Notes under the pieces: generated by a model
Database searches by the model: none
Seen by the model: only the letters and a program-made list of their open reading frames with translations
What the model was told of the DNA's origin: nothing
Part shown: positions 9,457 through 64,000 of the stretch, piece after piece
How the letters are laid out: each line of letters opens with the position of its first letter
How positions within the stretch are numbered: position 1 is the first letter of the stretch
Translations under genes and position numbers: made by a program
Origin: Paraphysomonas bandaiensis
Lineage: Eukaryota > Protista > Chrysophyceae
Assembly: GCA_965644295.1 (NCBI GenBank)
Contig: CBFFRP010000164.1
Span: 119,742-183,741, forward strand
DNA: 64,000 nt
Direction: 5' to 3'

Positions 9457-12400
9457 ATGCCACAGGAAAAGAAAGTCCCTTGTGAGGAATCACCCTCTAT
9501 AAGTACGAGTATTGAAGAGCTATTTTCAGATAAAGGAGTGTTCGGGTCGGTTGAGTTTCCTCCTGTTAACTCGACAAAGGAATTAAACTGGGTTACAGTT
9601 GGTGCTCTTCAAGCGATTGCTTGTATTGGAATAATTGTCTTTCAATATGTTCAAGGATCATATCACATTGTCAACTCAGTTGTGATATGTATTGCGCTTG
9701 TATTGGTTCCAGGTATTGAACTTCTTGCAAACTTTACTGAGCCCTCGAATTTAAAATCGACTATCACGGCGTTTGTGTTGGTGATGTTTGTCGACTTTGT
9801 AGTCGCATACATGTCGTGGACATCTACCTTCTCGACACTCTATATATCCTTATTCATTGTATTTAGACTTTTTATTAACGGGCTTGCGGCAACTAATTTC
9901 CTTGTCATTATTCTCTATCTTAATTGGTCCTGTAATAGAGGGTCGCTGTCACATGTCGATGTAGTTTTGGTGTGTTCGATGTTTGCCGTCGCGTTTGTAT
10001 TAAGTCAATTTCTCCGTCGGTCTCGAAAACGGTATGTGTACAAATTGTTTTTTTTTTTCATTTTCATTATACTGTGGGCAGGTTCAAGGAAAATATTCGA
10101 TACTTGCTTCGCTTGAGGAGAAAGATTGTTTTGGAGAAACACTTCACAAATATACTTGTATCAAGCTCTCTAGGCTGGAGACACTGCTCAGATGGTGCCA
10201 GCTTTGATGACACCCCCGCGAGTCGAATTGAGACCCTTTTCGGGGGACAAACTACGGAAGGGGGTTTTGGAGTCTCGGTTGGTGCAGATACAGAAAGAAA
10301 GTCATCAGAAGGACCTCGACGACGCACGAATCGCCTCGTCGACTCGTGTTTATCGAAAGAGATTCTCTCCTCTCGAGGCAAACCGATGGGAACTGTTCAG
10401 ACTATGATGCACTTCAGGAACGTATGTAGAAAGGTGTGCACTCTCATTGCCATCCGGCCGCTGCTAGCGGGATTTGGTGAGTGCCAGGTGGAGGACTCTT
10501 TGCAGAGTAAGCGTATATGGAGGCTTCTGCATCGGATTGCTGAGCACCATAAAGTCACACTCGTTCGCAAGTTTGGTGACGTATGGGTGGGATGTATTGG
10601 TTTTTTTGAGGAGTGTTGGGACTCAAAGGAAGTAAACGCTATCCACGCTGTGCAAATGGCCTGTGACGTTCTAAACTCTTCTGAACAGCTAGACATTGCA
10701 TTCACATGTGCTATAGATCATGGTAGAGTTGTTGGTGGTTTTGTCAACGGGATATTTACTTTCGATGTGTTTGGTCCGGAGATTCTGTGGGTGCTGTCTG
10801 TGTGTGAGGCTTGCAGCAAGCGTAAAATAATCGTCAGTCGTAGCACTAGGTCTCTTATTAACAAGAATTCTCTCGAGAAGTCGTTCTCGTATGAGCCTTG
10901 CGCAGTGCTTCTTCCCGATGGACGGGACCCAGAGAGAGCATGGGCGGTGGTGAAAGTAGCGAATGAGGCAAAATGTTCGATTGCGTGTAACTCATCGTCA
11001 TATTCTTCGTCTCCTCGAGAGGGTGAGGATAGCAATGTGCTTCCATGGTTTATGATTGAGCACGTATTCGATAGTGACCTGGCATACAACGGGGGCAACC
11101 TTGGCACCTGGACTTCCGATGATACATCACCCGCCGCGCAAAGCTTGGCGATGGAGCTTCAGTATGTTCCGGCCTGTATTCGCTCCATTATTGCCGCAAT
11201 AACAGCTGCGAGCCCAAATGTGAATCTTGATCACGAGACAAGTGGGCGCCGAATCTCTGGGTCAGATTGTCTAGATCCAGCACGGACTGATGCACAGAAA
11301 GCGCAGGAGGAGGGTATAGTGAGGGCTCTTCATCACTTAATGCTTACAAGGGTGCTACCGGATACTTTGCTGCTTTTTTATTTACCAGATTACTTGATAT
11401 CTTCTAAATCAAAGTCGCCGGTTCGTTGTGATAAAAATGAAAGTCTCTCCAGTCTTCCAGGGAAAACTGCCGAAGAATCTGATATCGACTATGTGGTGAA
11501 TAACTCTTTCCCTCCCCCGCTTCATTATGAATACAACAGAGTAAAAGCCTTTATTCACTTTCTCCGAACTGATTTTGTTGTTATTGTAAGGCAGTATGTC
11601 TTGAATATAACAACTTTTTTGTACTCGAGACGCAAAGGACGGAAGTCGCTTGATTCCCGACGCGTGTATTGCTATGAAGAAGAGAACTCAGATGTTAATC
11701 GGGAAGGTGATTCCTTCGTCGATAACAGAGGCTTAAATCCAGAAAATGACTTGCCTCCTCAGGAAAGTACTTTCCCCACAACAGGTTATGGAAATAGTAT
11801 GGAAATGAATCCAATAAAGTCCTCGTGTTCAAGAGATGAACCCATAATTGATTCCTCGGATATATTTCGGCCGTCGCAGGACTGGGAAGAGTTTCACCGG
11901 TCCTGCCATTCCGCTCATTACCGATTTTTGGATGTGGTTATGTGCATTGCATTATCCGCAGTTAGTATATATGTCTGTGTAGATCATGACAATAGTCTCG
12001 ATTTCTCGAATGAGATAACTTTGTGCGCTCACTTGATAGCACCTGCGGCTACGATTTGGTCGACACTTGTTTTTGAGAAGCGTGAATACCCTGTGGCTAT
12101 ATATATCATGGTGAGTTGTTTCCATTTAAAAAATCATAATTCATTGGTATTGCTTGCAGATGACTCTGCTCCGAGTAGTGGCAATTAATTTCTTCCCGGT
12201 GTCAGGGAAAGACTCTGCCACGAAACTTCTCGTTTATTTCTTAGGATGGATATACTTTAGCTTTAATCAACGAGTGAAGTACTTTATGTTTGATGTTATC
12301 GTCATTGCTCTTCAACTTCAACATATGAGTGGAGTGCATGACACTGCAGTGCTAGGTGGTTCCGACGTAATCGGTATTTTGCTGGGGTTGTTCTTCTTTG

Positions 12401-15351
12401 TCGTATGTTTTGTTATCGCGGAATATTACACTTTTTTGTGCTATATAGTCGATCATATTCTCGTTCCCTACGAAAAGGAAGTCTATGAGGCCGAAAGGGA
12501 AGTTGCGTTGACTGTCTGCGGCGGCTACCTTCCACACACTAAGACCGGTATATCGAGGGACCTTCTTGCCCCTCGTTGTTATCGCAACTGTGCTGTCTTG
12601 GCCTTTCATATAAAGGCCGCGGAAAGTATTCCTGCGGTCGCTGATGTCCCTGACGTTGCATCGTTAATCGATTATCTCTACAAGTTCATGGACGGCTGTG
12701 TGAAAAAATTTGGATTTCTAAGTAATTTTGGCTGAGTTTTAACTTCTGCATATCTAAAATTGTGTTTACAGGCGTCTGTCATTTCTCTGGTATTCATATA
12801 TCTGCAATATGCGAAGATGAAGAGTTCAAAAAGCTTGTATCTTCCTCGAAATCATCTGTGTCTTCCGCACCTTATATTCCCCGAGCTGTAGCGTGTGTTC
12901 GATATATGCAGAAGACATTGATGGAGTTCAATACCCAGAATAGTATGAATATCACATTGGGTGTCAGTTTGAGTCATGGAAACGCCTTGATTGGGTTGAA
13001 TGGTAGTGTCTGTAATGCCTGCTTTGATATCTGCGGTAGAGCACGTGACCAGGCATTTTATATGTGTGCCCGCCAAACCAACAGGGTAGTCATATCTTCC
13101 GCCTACATAGAAGAGATTAAGCGACTTCGCCATGTTTCTGAGGCATTGTATTATCCGGTTGACTCGAAGCTGCCTTTTTTTCAGGGTTGCCAGCAATGGT
13201 ACACTCTTCAACTGCACGGTGGATACTTTGGGGCATGCTCCAGAGAGCTTAAGGACTACTTATATATAGGGTTCTTGGGCGAAGGGGGTAATGGATCTGT
13301 ACACCTGCTGCGAGACAAGATAAACAGGGTTCAAGTAGCTGTGAAGGGTATACGATGGAGCATGGGAAGGACTTCTAGTATACACCACATCAGACGGGAA
13401 CTAATCATCTTGCAACAACTTCAACATCCTAACATCGTAAACTTCAAATTCTGTATCATTAAGCGCGCGAAGATATATATAGTTATGGAGTACATTAGAG
13501 GCGGTACACTGAGGCAGATTGTTGAAGAGCATAAGCCCAATTTACACGACTTACGGGTCTGGTTTGCTCAGCTGGTGCTTGCTCTCGGGTATCTTCACCA
13601 CCAGGGAATTATGCACCGCGACGTCAAGCCGAGCAATTGCATGATTGATACTTTCGGCCACTTGAAGCTGACGGACTTCGGGCTAGCCATCAAGGATGAT
13701 GATATGACAAGTGGTGGTAGCTGGAGCGCTGTCGCGGATACGAACCATGAGAGCACCCACCCTCATCCCTGTCAGGACGAACACACTGTGGTGCGCATGA
13801 AGTTTTATTACCTTTACCTTTGTCAACGTTTTTCTTCAGGGAGGCGCCTTAAGTCGGTCCACTCAATCTTTAATGCAGAATATATTCCCTATACGAGAAA
13901 ATCTGGATTTGGATAGGAAAATTAAACATAATGAAAGTATTTTGGTTGTAGATAGCGTAAAAGCAAGGCTGCGCCGAAACGTGAAGCTGTTAAAGCAAGG
14001 ATTTACGGTCTGGCAGGCCAATAACGACGATGAGGCCATGGACTTGCTGTACCACAGGGAAACGCACAAGGTTGATCTAATAATACTAGATCTTGACACC
14101 AGCGATGACAGAACCGGAGGGTGGGGCTTTTTATCAGTGCTCTGGGAGCACAGCGAGTGGAGGCATATTCCTGTGGTAGTAATGACTGTGTCTCATGACT
14201 TGGACTTCTCGTCGCCGTGCTGGGAGGTAAGCACTCTTTGTGGGGTCGCTATTTTTTCCTGATGTTGTTTCTGCATATACAGAAGCGATTGCCGGATATC
14301 AAAGTTCGTCCGAAACAAATTTTGTCGCATCCATTAAATTACGAAGCAACGAAGTAAGAAGGAAATGTTTAATGTGAATTGATATAAGTGCTGTTGTAGG
14401 AATTACTTCGAAATGCTCTGTCGGCTAGAGTCGTCCTGGGGTGCACAGCAAACCCCCAGTAAAGGCACCAATAGCTCATCAAATAAATTGCGAGTCCTTC
14501 GTGGCTCCGTCTTTGACAACAGATTCGATGAAGTGTACCGTAAATATCATCATGATCATGCTTATTGTGATGAGACATCATCCCCACCTCAAAATAAAGC
14601 TCGAAGGCGTCTCAATATAAGAGGTTACGGGCTGGTTGGCACTGTACAGTATATGGCACCTGAAATGCTTGCACGGGAACCGTATGATGAGTCCGTAGAC
14701 TGGTGGTCCTGCGGTGTTCTTTTCTTCGAGTGTGTTATGCGTAGAAGGCTCTTTGATGGTTTTGGAAATACCCTTTTAGCTCAAGATATTTTGCATTGCA
14801 ACATAGAAAATCGACTAGAATCATTTCGGCAGCTTCCAGCTTCCCTAAAGGATCTTTTACTCCACATGTTGGATAGAGATATTAACAATAGGTACGATGA
14901 GCAGCTCATAAAGGAGCATTCATTTTTCAACGACCCTGAGACTCCTGTTGAGCCCTATGTTGTGGGGAAGCAGTACGAGCCCATTGGGTTTGTTGGGAAG
15001 GGCAAGCGTCCTGTAGTGGAAAAGTCATGCGACGGATCTCTACCGGGAAGCGCATCTTTCGATGACCTTGTCAGTTTCTCGTCTCAGTTCAAACCTCAAC
15101 CAGTAGCTCTTAATATAGTGAGCGATGAATTGCGGGAGCGTCAAAAGAAAGAATTTTTCAACTCAGGTAGCTTATCAGATTCCTCACGGAACATTAAACC
15201 GAAGCCGAAGGAAGGAAGTAGCAAGGGAAAGAAAGGGAAAGATTCGAATACGTCATACTTGCCTAAGGTTTTGGAAGATAGGGAGAATTCGAATAGCGGA
15301 GATGACGTATCACTCGATGATCGTGAAAATGAAACTACATCTGCGTGGTGA
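9457..15351 (+). CDS. Multidomain membrane protein: TM block - class III cyclase-like domain - TM block - second cyclase-like domain - AGC Ser/Thr kinase interrupted by a receiver (REC) domain; 7 exons
   Basis: Six frame-preserving GT-AG introns (10032-10081, 12111-12159, 12722-12771, 13791-13839, 14227-14282, 14354-14399) join the track ORFs at 9457, 9972, 12154, 12762, 13873 and 14413. Kinase motifs: GEGGNG, VAVK, HRDVKPSN, DFG, GTVQYMAPE, DWWSCG. Cyclase-like motifs: KFGDVWVG, HGRVVGGF, FDVFG. REC motifs: ILVVD, DLIILD, IPVVVMT. Confidence 0.82.
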
Positions 15352-16177
15352 GTAGTAATGTTTGAAATTATTTGCAATATATTATTTTTTTATTGGCGGT
15401 TCAGTAGTTGATATCTACATATATCATACTGTATATTGATCGAATGAATTCCAATTTGATTTGTTTCTGAACTACGCTTTATGTCGCAAGTACTAATTTT
15501 ATAAAGTCATTGTACCAGTAGACGTTGATCATGTTTTAAAATAACGTTATTTCCATTGTATTGACGCAGTTCTGATTTTATTCTGCCAATTATTTCTATA
15601 TGTACTTGCCCCTACGCCCCTACACTGTGTAAAAAGAGACCACCAATAGCCAGTGGTATGTATAGCTATATTTGTAAGATATGCAATTAAGAGCTGTATT
15701 TTAAGTATATGAAGTATGACCGTTACTTAAAGAATACTGTAGTAGTGCATGTGAGTACTGATTACTAGCAATAGGCGTGTAAAATTAGAACTAATGTGGC
15801 AAAACGATTTAACTAACTAGTGCTATTGTAAGGCAATAGCAAGCCACAAGTTGATAGTAGCGATAGTGTTATTAACTTGTTTTATCAGGGTTATCTGTGA
15901 TAATAATGACGAGCATTCCAATCTGTCTTCTATCACAGACTACACCTACAGCTCACACCTTGGACATATATATGCCCTTACTCTACACCAATCCACTGTA
16001 CATATTGGACTGTACATATCCTACACCGTATTGTCATCATACACCGTATAACGGTATACCGTTATCCTACTGTATACTGTAGCTGGCTGTCTTCACTACA
16101 CTGTATATATCCTGTATACTACCAAGCCAAGCTCACATTCCAACGACAGTCAATCTCCTATACGGGGATGACAACAA

Positions 16178-21399: not shown

Positions 21400-22562
21400 T
21401 TCTTCTAACTATACCTAAGCTTAAATCTGCGTATCTCCTACTAATTTCAGAGCCGAAGTGCTGTACAAAATCTATATGGTATTGGCAAATGAACACAACC
21501 TATATTGATATTTATTATTATACAAAAAGAGTATATTATCGCATACACTAGCTAGTTTAATATCAAGTAATGAATTACTTTTGATCTTTTGATTGGATTA
21601 CTAGCCACGCATTTCCTTACTTTTCGTAATTTTTCCCATGCAGTTAAAGATTATTATATCAATTAAAAGCATATACGCGATATTAATTGATATATACCAT
21701 TTTTCTGTGCGTGAGATAGTTATAACAATCAAGTATCTAATCACTAATCACATCTGCCAGTCACACACCCTCCACTAAAGGTGATATTCGTATACTTAAC
21801 ACTACTTGATTCCTTTTGTTTCTGTGTTTGGGAAGAGATAATTAATAACGTGATATTCTAATATATATATCGCGCATAACTCTCACCACGAAAAAGGAAT
21901 TATACCACCTTGAAGATGGCGAAATTATACTATCGTGGTCAATAACAATTTTGTAATTGAAAAAGAGATCGATTACTGGAGATTGTTGATGTTATCTTGT
22001 ATCATAAAATCTTTCAAATTCGTAGAATATCAAATGCTTTAAAGGACAGACAGGATTACAGCTAACAGATGGACCTAAGTTTGGCCACGTTAACGTCGGT
22101 ACTATGCTTCTGAAACAGTTTCCATGGCAGTTCTGATACTGGGAATGTAAATAATTATCGCAGCTGACACATTTATATCACACACAGAATTGATGAGATA
22201 TACATGTACATGGTGTATGCATCCATCTGGATATATGCGCACAGTGGTGGAAAAGTATGCAAATATACAAATATACCCATAAAATACAAACGAAAACTGT
22301 ACATTTTGATATCTCCTTCACAAATTTATGATTAAAAATTGCCGAAAGGGAACGGGCACAAACGGACACCGATCATACCACCATCTGACATCTGACACAT
22401 GGTACTCGACCAGGACTGGACATGTGCAAATGGATATGTGGGGTGGGCGGGATGGTGTTGCTAACCTGCTGCATAGAATAGTATTCATTTCACTGTTTAA
22501 GCACCAGTTCAGACGATTCCTCAGAGCTTATATTGAATGGATGTAGGCCTCTCGTTAAGAGG

Positions 22563-23804
22563 ATGATGATGACTATCAAGGAGCCTGCAATGGATTCTGC
22601 TTATCGTAGCTCTGACAATGCTACTGTGGCTAATCCGACACTTGTTAACGAAAGTTGTGAGGAAAAGACGAACCACATGGTCTTATCGTCCTTCTGGATA
22701 GACAAGCCGGCAATATTCGCCCCCACGTATCACTATGAGACTAACCGCTACAAGAACCAGCTTGAGAAGTGGCCTTTGCGAGTTCTATGGAGTAATATGA
22801 ACGATGCATGCTTTAGTACTTTCGAAACTCCTCAGAGGTTGAAAGCTATGCGAAAATCTGCTGCGGACGAGACAATATCTATTCTTCGCACAGGTGTCTA
22901 CAAGAACGAGAACGGTGAACAGGTCGATATTCTAAAGGATATTCAGAATTCCATTGCCTCAAGCATATGCTACGGTCCAGATGCCGTTATTTTTTCGACA
23001 GCTGAAATTAAACCGCTTTATAAAACTACCCAAATAGAAGTGCGAAATGTGAGCACCCTCGAAGCCTGTCGGGACCTCTGGACTCAATGCAGAGGAGAGG
23101 TTGGATGTCTTTGTTTTGCCTCTGGCAAGAATCCTGGTGGGGCTTTCTTGGGAGGATCAGATGGGCAGGAGGAAAGTATTGCGCGGTCGTCATCTTACTA
23201 TCACTGTGTTATCCGGGACCCGTCGCTTTATGAATTCAACCGTATTAACAAAGATCCCTTCCAAAGCGACCACATGATAGTTGCACCACATATGCCAGTT
23301 TTTCGACGAGATACATCACCATATAGCTTAATTGATCCCTGGTATTTGACTGCCATTTCCGCTCCTGCTGTTAATGCAACTTTGGTGAGGGAGCGCCATG
23401 TGTCTGAGGGCGAGGAACGCATTCGGCAACGCATGCGTGCTAGAGTTCGACGCATTCTGACAGCTGCTTATGCACATGGTATTCGGAACCTCGTCCTTGG
23501 GGAGTATGGGTGCGGATCCCTCGGCAATGATCCGAAAGAGGTGTGCTACTACATGGTCTCTATCTCATAGCTGATATAATGTTAATAGGTTGCCGATATA
23601 TTCCGTGATGAGCTGATGCTTCCGAATTCACCTTTCAGATGTGCCTTCGGGCATGTCGTATTTGCAATTCATGATACGCCTACCACCACGATAGGTGGTG
23701 GACGACCTAAGATTCGCTGTCTTCCGGCGTTTGCAGATGTGATTTGTCCTCTGGGTCGAGTTATCATTACAAGTGCTGATGGGTCGGGACCTCGTTACAT
23801 ATGA
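22563..23804 (+). CDS. Bacterial-type poly(ADP-ribose) glycohydrolase (TIGR02452/DUF2263 macrodomain), 2 exons
   Basis: LCFASGKNPGGAFLGGSDGQEESIARSS (PARG catalytic loop with QEE), AISAPAVN and LVLGEYGCGSLGNDP. Intron at 23541-23589. The start codon is uncertain. Confidence 0.85.
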
Positions 23805-24514: not shown

Positions 24515-25810
24515 CTAGTAATTTTGCTTTCGCAGATGGTTCAGATAATGTGGTGATTCATATGAATATTCGTTGATAATATTCTGTATTTCAGCGGGTA
24601 ACTTTCTTGCAACAAATGATGAATGTGATGATCTTATAGTGCTCCTCTCATCGAAGTGCTTCAGTTCAAGACAAGCTCTTGTAACATTGACATCTACATG
24701 CAAAGGTGATCTAATTCGTTTGTAGAGTAGGTCATCCCAGTTGAAAACACTAAAAAATGGATGGCGTTGTAGCTCTTCGCGGTTCGATCTAGCACCTAAT
24801 CTCTGCGGTATTCGTACATCCATAAATCCTCGAATAATAGAGACAAAATTGTAAGATACTTTTTTCCCAGAGTATGTCATGAGTGGTATTCGCATCACCA
24901 AGTGCTTGGGAAGCGGTACATTCAATACATGCTTTCGACCCTCATCTACCATATCAGTGGATTGATTATCACTTGCACTACAAGAAAACTCATCTATACT
25001 CGTCTTTGTCGAGTAAGTTGAATAGGACAAATCTCTCACAGTAGGACTATCCACCGGAAAATGTTGGTATGTAGACTCGACAAATGCTGTGAATGATGCT
25101 GGGCAGTTTTTGTCAAATGGTCGCGCGCCGAAAAGTAGCTCAAACATTACAACACCTAAAGCCCAGAAATCCACTTCCATACTATGTGAGTGTGACTGAG
25201 TTAGTACTTCTGGAGCTAAATATCCAACTGTCCCACTGCACAAACTGCAGACAGATCCCGCAGATGTATTGTAAGATATTCCAAAGTCGGTAAGTCTGGG
25301 GTATCCTTGCTCATCAAGTACAATATTTTCGGGCTTCACATCTGAAACATGTGAGAAACAAGTGAGAACATGTCATGATAGGTCATTACAACTCATACCT
25401 CTATGAATTATCCCGTGATTATGAATATGAGATAGTGCAGACACCATACATGCACCTATGAAAGCAACATCGAACTCTGTGAATTCAATACAATCATTTA
25501 AGTGATATCGGAGATCACCCCCTTCCAAGAGATCTAATATCAATGCACAGTTTTTGTTATCATGATAAGAATAATACAAGTTACATATGAAACCATTAAA
25601 TGAGAGTTTTTTCAATGATAAAATCTCTTGTTTCAATACAACAGTCCCTCCTGTTCGTGATATACAATTATCAATACTGATGATCTTAATGGCAAATAGC
25701 TTTTTAGTTGATATATGTGTTGCACGCCGTATGATACCATATGATCCCTCACCAATTTTGGGGCCCAGTGCAAAAGATCCACAGGTTCTACTTGATGAAC
25801 CTGAACCCAT
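24515..25810 (-). CDS. AGC-family Ser/Thr protein kinase, 2 exons, possibly N-myristoylated
   Basis: MGSGSS start; GEGSYG, FAIK, GGDLRYHL, IIHR|DVKPEN across a short intron, DFG, GTVGYLAPE and DFWALG. Confidence 0.9.
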
Positions 25811-61279: not shown

Positions 61280-64000
61280 CGCCCAACAAACACCCAATAA
61301 CAAATTACAAATAGAGCCTACACACACTCCAGTGCAGGGATGCAGCCCTGGCAGTGTTGCTCTGACCCACAGCATGACCTCCCCCAGTGCCATCCTCGCA
61401 GTCTGCATATCCGACAGGGTCCCCATTCTGCGGGTTTACTCAACAACCAATTTCGCCCCCATCAGCTCATTGCAACAGCTGAAAACGCTGCTCCAAGCTT
61501 ACTGGCCTATCCCACAACACCCGAAACCACCCTGGAGGCACCTACTTGCACCGAACACGCCCTCTGTGGAATATTAAGGGTACCAGAGCTCCATCACAAA
61601 CCTCGTCTACGGTGTTTTCATACTTTACACTCCTCCGTCACACCCACTCCAACATCATCACACACACCACCGATACTCAGTCGTATACACGCAACCTACA
61701 CCACTGGAATACACCGTATATTACACTGTATATTGTGCAGAGTACACACAATCCACCGCCTCCCGCCTCTACACATGAAGAGTACTACAGCCCTTATACG
61801 CTCTTCCTTACCACTCCAGTATTCTGATGTATACCAGGTATACGCCATCCTGGTTCCACACCGACACACTCCACCCCCACTGCATCTACTCCCTCCTACA
61901 CTATGCCACTATACCTTTTTACATCACACCCCATACATTAACAACAAACACACACAACTCCTTATCTTCCATATGAGCCATATCGACCTGTCCGTGCCTT
62001 ATTTTCGTCGCGATACAATCTAGTCTACACATGGTGCCGACCGCAGAGAACCTCCGTTTCACCGTTACCTCCGCCCACTCTATTCCACTCAACACACACA
62101 CACCGTCCCATTTCGAACCCGCTGTGTTCAACGCCATATGAGCCATGTAGCCATGTATGCACATTGTGCTCGACGCAAAGACCATATGCGATACAGCTCA
62201 CGAGATGCCCAGAGCGGACTGTGGAGATGCTGTGCATGCACCTCGCGTGCCTGTTCACAGCCCATATGGTACTGCTCACCTGCATCAAACCACCCACATC
62301 CACCTCCCCTCCCGTGCCCGTCCAATAGCACACCACCACCTACATCCTCCAACTCACGCTCTCACAGGATGCACAGAGCGGACTGTAGAAACGCTGTGCA
62401 TGCACCAGGTGTGCATGTTCACAGCCCATGGTACTGTTCACCTGCATCAAAACACCCACATCCACCTCCCCTCCTGTTCCCGTGCCCGTCCAATAGCACA
62501 CCACCACCTACATCCTCCAACTCACGCTCTCACAGGATGCACAGAGCGGACTGTGGAAATGCTGTGCATGCACCAGGCGTGCCTGTTCACAGCCCATGGT
62601 ACTGTTCACCAGCATCAAAACACCCACATCCACCTCCCCTCCTGTTCCCGTCCCCCAGCACACCATCACAAACACCCACTGACGCAGAGCAAAGAGAAAC
62701 AAAATCCACCCAGACCACGCCAGTTTGGACCCGGCTACAGTAGCGACGACAGCGGCGATGGCCCGCGCAAGCGACGACCACACAAACCCCCTAACGCGCC
62801 TCAACCACCCATAACCCCAGGACACACTCATAAACCCGATGCCCACACCAAGACACCCGCTCCAGACACCACACGGCAACCTCCCGGACGGCATCGTCAC
62901 AGCCTGACGCTTGCTGACTATTTTCCGCCCATCCCGCCACCCAAGTCTGACGCCCGGAGCACACCCGCGGATCAACCAACACTCTCGCCCGCAGAACAAA
63001 CCCCGATCGAAAACACTCTGGACATTCCCCTATCCCAAGACCGGCCAACCCCATGTGTGTCACCATCCCCCCCGACACTGCTACCCCAGCCCGCTCGGCG
63101 GGAAGCGCCTCCGTTCACCAGTTCACTTACCAACGCCTGGACCGCATACGACAACACACATCGAGTTGCAGTCTCCCTACGCGAAGACCTGCTACGCCAC
63201 ATACACAACACCGTCATGGCAGGCACGACTGACTGGAGTCAGCTTTTTCAAATTATACACGAAGACGCAAACTACATCCAAGTCGCCAACTTCGATTGGG
63301 AGGCTGACTACAGAGCCACAATAGAACGCGGCCTAGACGCCCTTGCAACCACATACCAAATTCATACCGCTCCCTCGCCTGGACACTACCCTAAAGTCCC
63401 TCTACAAACTGCTGACGATGCAAAAGAACTGCATAAGTTCATCGCCCATTTACAACGACTTTGCCTTGCCTCCGGACAGGCTCACACAAGCCGACTGCTC
63501 CGCACCCTCCAATGCGCGCACAAGGCTCTAACCACCATGCCCCCTCAGCGATGCGCACTCTCTGCAGATCATCACATGGAGATCACTGACGTCCAGACAT
63601 TGCTCCAGCTTCTTCGTACCAACTTCCGACTATGGAAAGGAACCTCAGGCTCCCTATCTAGCGGCTGGGTAATGCTACACAACCACCAAAACCACGACCC
63701 CAAAAGACTGCGACCACACACAACGTCGCTGTAACCAACAAACATTACTTCCTCCTACGAATACCGGACATCGGATCCAAGCTCGACGAGGCGCACTGCA
63801 GAGCCAAGTCGGCACTCTCCCACTTCCTCCATCACGCAGCACAGAGGACCCCACAGCCACACCCTCGAGAGGAGCATCAACCCCAATCAGCCCTGCCAAG
63901 GCCCACGTCACTAACGATCCCCGCAGGTCACCTCACCCTTATAGCACCACACAGCGGGGTGCCCGAGCCATAACCGCGCGCCTAGCCGAACCGGGCAACC
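61280..64000 (+). mobile_element. C/A-rich repetitive element with a long Pro/His-rich ORF; possibly the 5' part/ORF1 of a retroelement (incomplete)
   Basis: Strong C+A strand skew, no introns evident, ORF 62157-63734, and a second partial copy inserted with a TSD at 32371-33234. No RT or endonuclease motif is visible in the window. Confidence 0.5.
62210..62670 (+). repeat. Tandem repeat of ~163-169 bp, about 2.7 copies
   Basis: CAGAGCGGACTGT unit starts at 62210, 62373 and 62542. Confidence 0.9.

Follow-up and report, generated by a model that had tools for sequence, protein, structure and literature searches.

Protein kinases are controlled mainly at their activation segments, where the known inserts are for the most part disordered or short helices. 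In ordinary kinases, roughly 20-35 residues separate the DFG and APE motifs. A large insert between these motifs is found in Greatwall/MASTL and in fungal Rim15, which are AGC kinases, Rim15 having a C-terminal receiver as well, and plant AGCVIII kinases carry large inserts at the same site. In NDR/LATS kinases, an insert of 30-60 residues with a basic autoinhibitory segment precedes the activation loop. Pseudo-receivers, which keep the CheY fold, miss the catalytic residues and work independently of Asp phosphorylation, are known from plant PRR/TOC1, the N-terminal domain of KaiA and the FrzS receiver. In bacterial fusions of Ser/Thr kinases and receivers, the domains are arranged in tandem and are not known to be nested. 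Here, a stretch of 64,000 nucleotides from the chrysophyte Paraphysomonas bandaiensis (contig CBFFRP010000164.1, positions 119,742 to 183,741; hereafter the window) was analysed, in which a gene of the forward strand encodes a kinase whose DFG and APE motifs are separated by an insert with a CheY-like receiver domain. The initial annotation of the window had already proposed a receiver fold inside the kinase activation segment, a proposal on which Pfam, phmmer, AlphaFold/Foldseek and hhalign now agree, together with a split Pkinase match.

The insert occupies the same activation-segment site as in Greatwall and Rim15, and Rim15 likewise pairs an AGC-type kinase with a receiver-like domain. In these kinases, however, the insert is long and is not a recognised folded domain, the receiver of Rim15 lies after the kinase and not inside it, and the membrane anchoring and cyclase-like domains of the window protein set it further apart. 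NDR/LATS kinases share the insert site, and the basic patch of the window protein, just upstream of the P+1 region, recalls theirs, but the window insert makes the loop about 245 residues longer than a normal one and includes a folded domain, in a kinase that has no activating Ser/Thr where one is usual and in which neither a hydrophobic motif nor an AGC tail was detected. FrzS receiver structures were among the Foldseek matches of the window receiver, whereas the PRR/TOC1, KaiA and FrzS domains are terminal or stand-alone and none is known to be embedded in a kinase catalytic domain. A Hanks-type kinase and a receiver also share one polypeptide in bacterial fusions such as a Myxococcota cluster (Pkinase + Response_reg), whose score of 0.81 in the ESM Atlas makes it a lead only. 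The receivers of hybrid histidine kinases (best match P0008) are significantly similar in sequence and fold, but in the window family His stands in for the Lys and Ser for the second acidic residue, with a longer beta3-alpha3 loop and a variable acceptor. Searches of the open-access full-text literature gave no account of a kinase activation segment with a receiver nested in it, an absence that is not proof, and a paper on the Phytophthora kinome (PMC3019232) makes no mention of a receiver inside a kinase domain. The arrangement is apparently undescribed before.

A receiver domain within a split kinase domain

The gene and the parts of its kinase region, all on the forward strand and numbered by position in the window and residue in the spliced protein, are as follows.

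9457..15351, forward strand: whole gene, seven exons, 1864 amino acids (RNA joints and a single open frame)
9457-10031, 10082-12110, 12160-12721, 12772-13790, 13840-14226, 14283-14353, 14400-15351, forward strand: exons 1 to 7
10032-10081, 12111-12159, 12722-12771, 13791-13839, 14227-14282, 14354-14399, forward strand: six introns (46-56 nt, GT..AG)
13257..13682, forward strand: kinase N-lobe and catalytic loop to DFG, residues 1218-1359 (Pkinase E 5.6e-37, profile positions 5-147)
13683..13935, forward strand: linker 1, residues 1360-1427, split by intron 4 (13791-13839); predicted local distance difference test (pLDDT) score <65
13936..14226, forward strand: receiver from beta1 to alpha4, residues 1428-1524 (Pfam, phmmer, AlphaFold with core pLDDT >90, Foldseek)
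13951-13953, 14089-14091 and 14185-14187, forward strand: receiver residues Asp1433 (followed by Ser1434), Asp1479 at the acceptor position, and Thr1511
14227..14282, forward strand: intron 5, 56 nt, GT..AG; joint in sequencing runs X1, X2 and X4, position common to all relatives
14283..14353, forward strand: exon 6, residues 1525-1548, end of alpha4 and beta5 (RLPDIKVRPKQILSHP)
14328-14330, forward strand: His1540, which with Pro1541 occupies the place of the conserved Lys-Pro (hhalign to canonical receivers)
14354..14399, forward strand: intron 6, 46 nt, GT..AG; kept in relatives
14400..14436, forward strand: start of exon 7, probable receiver alpha5 (NYFEMLCRLESS), residues 1549-1560; Tyr, Met and Cys invariant (hhalign)
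14437..14637, forward strand: linker 2, residues 1561-1627; AlphaFold helix, pLDDT <50
14638..14928, forward strand: kinase P+1 loop and C-lobe (GTVQYMAPE ... DWWSCG ... HSFF), residues 1628-1724 (Pkinase E 4.1e-17, profile positions 157-263)

The match to the Pkinase profile is broken between positions 147 and 157, i.e., in the activation loop, which is the sole part of the profile left without a match. DFG (13674-13682) and GTVQYMAPE (14638-14664) stand where the initial annotation had put them, as do the other motifs it quoted, and its figure of about 270 residues between the two corresponds to 268 residues from DFG to GTV in the spliced model, the spacing from DFG to APE being 274 residues. 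Within this insert, the receiver takes up residues ~1428-1560. In Pfam, Response_reg (PF00072) was matched by exon 5 alone at E 1.8e-6; its 28.5 bits fall slightly short of the gathering score (30.2), but the exon holds just positions 1-82 of the 111 of the profile. The same exon retrieved solved regulators from the PDB by phmmer (RR468, CheY-type and Spo0F, E down to 6.5e-6), and a HMMER search of 1.84 billion protein representatives returned 806 proteins at E<=1e-3. The best canonical match, P0008, is a hybrid histidine kinase, judged bacterial from its gene neighbourhood (E 1.7e-15, 33% identity). The ten canonical matches that were checked (P0008-P0014 through Pfam, P0008-P0012 through the source name) were hybrid histidine kinases or other response-regulator-type proteins, and the relatives P0005, P0004 and P0151 are recorded with PF00072. 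Judged by these alignments, the similarity to receivers is well beyond chance.

The structural prediction points the same way. An AlphaFold model of exon 5, built on an alignment of 44 sequences, has a mean pLDDT of 80 and a core above 90, and its elements follow the order b1-a1-b2-a2-b3-a3-b4, as in receivers. Foldseek placed 49 receiver-domain entries and one ubiquitin protease among its top 50 PDB matches (probability 1.0, TM score 0.47-0.63, root-mean-square deviation 2.2-3.8 Å, 84-107 alignment columns). Exons 6 and 7 encode the last quarter of the domain, which was not detected with a single-sequence profile. For hhalign, the exon pieces of ten family members were stitched together, with X at the junctions, and compared with an alignment of canonical receivers. 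The match had a probability of 99.6% and extended through beta5, with the His-Pro of the family on the canonical Lys-Pro, and the global alignment covered template positions 1-122 of 128; the C-terminal register is independent of the way in which the canonical set had been selected with exon 5. A home-made receiver hidden Markov model, of circular membership, aligned to model position 87 of 129 and was used for residue register alone. The phospho-acceptor position aligns with Asp1479 both in the PDB phmmer search and in hhalign. The invariant motifs NNDDEA and GWGFL were considered for a special meaning, which was rejected: they are the ordinary receiver motifs N-G-x-E-A-L and D-G-F-x-F-L of the canonical consensus.

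The two linkers that join the receiver to the kinase lobes are variable among relatives in length and composition, apart from one short motif each. In linker 1, this is the invariant LMQNIFP (13870-13890; Q13, N14, F16 and P17), and in linker 2 it is [VI]FDxxFDxxY (14509-14538; invariant F38, D39, F42 and Y46), after which a basic patch stands directly before G-L-V-G-T. In the CheY fold, the two ends of the chain are neighbours on the side away from the active site. Because these termini adjoin on one face, a receiver can sit in a loop without strain.

Gene model and transcripts

Starting from the ATG at 9457, the six joints give one open frame of 1864 amino acids in the spliced model. Short GT..AG introns were suggested by the sequence and its ORFs. 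The contigs of public sequencing runs were aligned to window positions 9800-15700, and RNA contigs of three studies (runs X1, X2 and X4) together show all six introns spliced out. A single contig of 5873 nt from X2 covers the whole stretch with all six joints, two contigs from the poly-A marine metatranscriptome X4 carry the three joints around the receiver exons, and X1 contributes the joints that follow exons 5 and 6. In the DNA run X18, which is colinear with the window, the introns are unspliced. The initial annotation had guessed receiver exons within 13840-14353, which correspond to exon 5 (13840-14226) and exon 6 (14283-14353), and had asked whether they might always be skipped. The joints carried by the RNA contigs of X1, X2 and X4 speak against such skipping: both exons are retained in every transcript contig spanning them, at a level of evidence where rare isoforms are not detectable. 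Skipping both exons (458 nt) produces a frameshift in the kinase C-lobe, and skipping exon 5 only (387 nt) is in frame. Three coding differences separate the window from other strains or runs (X2, X4 and X18), at 12044, 14202 and 14760, and all are synonymous according to the codons read from the sequence. The gene occurs in marine runs, among them poly-A metatranscriptomes of several studies, and is therefore expressed in natural communities.

Relatives of the nested kinase

Nine related loci were recovered from marine metagenomes and sequencing runs (L001, L004, L006, L007 and L009-L013), including L013, the one further locus given by a metagenome scan with family patterns. The search of 1.84 billion representatives returned few close relatives, all of them open reading frame (ORF) fragments of metagenome or run assemblies (P0001-P0007 and P0151), and no full-length annotated protein of the family was present in that library. 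An ESM Atlas search with P0001 matched generic kinase clusters only, with all scores <0.9. Wherever a contig reaches far enough, the order is the same, with an N-lobe ending in DFG, a linker, the receiver and a C-lobe with APE, and the alignment of L001 and L004 extends upstream into the membrane and cyclase-like part. A single ORF of L001 (P0001) runs through the N-lobe, linker and receiver without a break, so that the nesting is independent of the splicing model. Among the 151 library matches listed, this is the only one in which a kinase adjoins the receiver. The kinase residues of the relatives are intact in the parts read, namely the N-lobe of P0001 and, in the others, HRD to DFG and the C-lobe motifs. 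The receiver-in-kinase design is real, expressed and conserved.

Both receiver introns are conserved in position in all relatives, one after 'CW[EQK]' and the other inside alpha5. The intron between the kinase and receiver exons (13791-13839) is absent in L001, and L004 has an apparent extra intron inside its HRD region. With respect to synteny, the flanks of the window gene, a tetratricopeptide repeat (TPR) protein and a poly(ADP-ribose) glycohydrolase (PARG), have no counterpart beside L002, L007 or L008.

Active site of the receiver and selection

According to the end of beta1 and the acceptor position, the ten sequences (the window and its nine relatives) fall into three groups.

Group 1 (window, L001, L010 and L012): beta1 end D-S, acceptor Asp
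Group 2 (L004, L007 and L009): beta1 end D-S, acceptor Asn
Group 3 (L006, L011 and L013): beta1 end D-D-D, acceptor Ser, with an Asp two residues later

The acceptor position is thus Asp in four sequences, Asn in three and Ser in three; L007 and L009 read N-L-N and have no Asp within two residues of the acceptor. The conserved Lys after beta5 is His throughout (10/10), followed by Pro in seven sequences and by Thr in three. The initial annotation had noticed LSHP in place of the usual KP: the conserved Lys has indeed been replaced, by the His of S-H-P and not by the Ser, as 'HPFD' in relatives for 'KPFD' makes clear. The second acidic, Mg-binding residue at the end of beta1 is Ser in 7/10, the full D-D-D being found in group 3 only, and the Thr at the end of beta4 is kept in eight of the ten sequences, with Ala in L006 and L013. 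In group 3, the acceptor may have shifted to the Asp two residues on, or the Ser may be phosphorylated by the surrounding kinase.

Within groups, the receiver domain has a proportion of nonsynonymous differences (pN) of 0.06-0.17, against 0.54-0.92 for synonymous ones (pS). The ratio of nonsynonymous to synonymous substitution rates (dN/dS) was 0.07 for L006/L011 and 0.14 for L010/L012, pairs without saturation of dS, and the pair L007/L009, which has no acceptor Asp, gave a pN of 0.076 against a pS of 0.82. These values indicate strong purifying selection on the receiver, including lineages without the acceptor Asp. Because this constraint persists where the Asp is missing, the role of the receiver across the family is independent of a canonical acceptor Asp. 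The His found in all members indicates that the Lys-dependent chemistry had already been lost in the common ancestor. Taken together, the loss of Lys and a constraint that does not depend on the acceptor favour a pseudo-receiver over a His-Asp relay, and the phosphorylation chemistry of the receiver has probably been lost.

Kinase lobes and upstream membrane part

All the residues expected from Pkinase (PF00069) are there in the spliced protein: the G-loop GEGGNG, Lys1247, Glu1265, HRD (1337-1339), Asn1344 and DFG (1357-1359) in the N-lobe, and APE (1634-1636) and DWWSCG in the C-lobe. The kinase looks catalytically intact and apparently active. Its class is less sharply defined. The best solved relatives of the C-lobe were Akt-like kinases, PKC and PKA (27 matches in the PDB sequence search), and those of the N-lobe were mixed (GCN2, EGFR, CIPK, PKA, SGK and S6K among the 60 best PDB matches). 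MASTL was absent from these 60 N-lobe and 27 C-lobe matches, a weak test of kinship with Greatwall. The AGC C-terminal domain Pkinase_C (PF00433) gave no match at E<=1 on exon 7 in Pfam, and no hydrophobic motif FxxF[ST][FY] was seen by eye in the spliced protein. The window and the six relatives that keep the motif have Gly, within G-L-V-G-T, at the position of the activation-loop Thr, and L006 and L013 of group 3 read [ND/ES]-V-A-G-T instead; we take this Gly to be at the position equivalent to Thr197 of PKA. Since the solved relatives are mostly AGC kinases but no AGC C-terminal domain was detected and Gly stands for Thr, the AGC assignment is weakly supported, and the kinase is best termed 'AGC-like, unclassified'.

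From its N-terminus, the protein is laid out as a transmembrane (TM) block, a weak cyclase-homology domain, a second TM block, a second and very degenerate cyclase-like region, and the kinase with its receiver insert. The two hydrophobic blocks lie at residues ~43-182 and ~807-955. The first cyclase-like domain was matched by PF00211 at 26 bits (E 8.3e-6, gathering score 21.9) and had no PDB sequence match, and in the PDB search of the second region one cyclase alone was retrieved, at E 1.1. The cyclase part is probably degenerate, a pseudo-cyclase scaffold. As a side observation, the N-terminal two thirds of the protein (window 9457-13250) resemble a membrane adenylyl cyclase in layout (TM, cyclase-like, TM, cyclase-like).

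Possible action of the nested receiver

We consider it somewhat probable that the receiver is a pseudo-receiver in the loop of an AGC-like Ser/Thr kinase, acting independently of phosphorylation and controlling the activation segment. As a cytoplasmic C-terminal module, the kinase would belong to a large polytopic membrane protein whose cyclase-homology domains are very degenerate. With its fold kept and parts of its phosphorylation chemistry gone, the receiver would have become a regulatory or interaction module, tethered by two flexible linkers each bearing a conserved short motif (LMQNIFP in one, FDxxFDxxY and the basic patch in the other). Docking or dimerisation of the receiver and linker motifs might then hold the activation segment ordered or blocked. 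The need for such control would arise from an RD kinase having Gly where the activating phospho-Thr usually stands. Both the independence from phosphorylation and the control of the activation segment are what we infer from these features. The initial annotation put forward two mechanisms by which the insert could gate the activation loop directly. The comparative data speak against a His-Asp phosphorelay as a general requirement, with the Lys replaced in all ten sequences, the Mg-binding residue being Ser in seven and the acceptor Asn or Ser in six, and favour the allosteric pseudo-receiver, as a putative gate. Several points weigh against a pseudo-receiver that controls the kinase. The models made here gave no support for the receiver touching the kinase core. 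The AlphaFold model of exon 7 (seven sequences) has a pLDDT of 75-93 in the C-lobe but <50 in the insert part, where alpha5 is not confidently modelled, and is uninformative on whether alpha5 or the FD motif docks. The linkers are long enough for a simple looping-out of the receiver. The window protein retains Asp1433, Asp1479 and Thr1511, which leaves phosphorylation possible in its own species. Regarding the fold itself, the alpha4-beta5-alpha5 part is backed by the profile-profile alignment and not by a confident structure, and the canonical set used there had been picked by similarity to exon 5, which inflates the hhalign scores.

Three other explanations were considered. In the first, the receiver is a passive looped-out module, serving as a docking, dimerisation or localisation platform in a permissive loop without controlling the activation segment. 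The variable, low-complexity linkers of about 65 residues with low pLDDT on both sides speak for it. The proximity of the receiver termini would also allow strain-free insertion, at a site that tolerates large inserts in Greatwall/Rim15 and plant AGCVIII kinases. Invariant short motifs in both linkers and a basic patch directly before the P+1 loop fit such a platform poorly, and the absent activation-loop phospho-site suggests that another ordering mechanism is needed; we regard a passive module as possible but rather doubtful. A genuine phospho-accepting receiver is less probable, and to our minds unlikely. A relay from a histidine kinase or histidine phosphotransfer (HPt) protein would phosphorylate Asp1479 in the window species and its three closest relatives and directly switch the kinase, the Asn and Ser lineages having lost the relay input secondarily. 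Asp1433, Asp1479 and Thr1511 are indeed kept in the window, L001, L010 and L012, and Asp is ancestral because all canonical relatives have it. Against this, every member has His for the invariant Lys, the position of the Mg-binding Asp13 of CheY is Ser, the beta3-alpha3 loop does not have the usual M-P..D-G spacing, and sister lineages without the Asp are equally constrained. A more specific proposal, in which the Asp-keeping lineages have a relay-phosphorylated receiver whose phospho-Asp pocket, or its conformational change, substitutes for the activation-loop phospho-Thr, seems to us quite improbable. The case for an artefact of the gene model, with receiver exons that belong to another transcript or are normally skipped to leave an ordinary activation loop, draws on rare isoforms beyond the reach of contig evidence and on the in-frame skipping of exon 5 (387 nt). 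Contigs from three studies carry joints that include the receiver exons, the N-lobe, linker and receiver of L001 lie in the single ORF P0001, and skipping exons 5 and 6 together breaks the frame, all of which makes such an artefact extremely unlikely.

Other features of the window

Further features were noted in the remainder of the window.

22533-23570, forward strand: ORF with a microbial-type PARG catalytic domain (PF10021, E 1.9e-38)
24515-25339, reverse strand: ORF with the C-terminal half of a second protein kinase, residues 1-195 corresponding to Pkinase positions 124-262; it may carry an insert of about 55 residues
60001-64000: sharp change in composition, with a G+C fraction (GC) up to 0.57, GC skew of -0.30 then -0.35 and AT skew to +0.23; possibly coding sequence of low complexity or rich in repeats
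62157-63734: ORF of 525 amino acids without a Pfam match

Significance

The locus presents a complete and recognisable signalling domain nested at the control point of a kinase, selected and expressed in the sea. It would be a natural example of kinase control by domain insertion, relevant to engineered switchable kinases. With its fold maintained and its phosphotransfer probably lost, the receiver may serve as a case study of the eukaryotic reuse of two-component parts. Were relay phosphorylation of the Asp-keeping lineages true, the protein would instead be a hard-wired junction at which two-component signalling acts within the activation segment of a eukaryotic Ser/Thr kinase and so switches the kinase directly. 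The window protein is a candidate environmental signalling receptor in marine protists.

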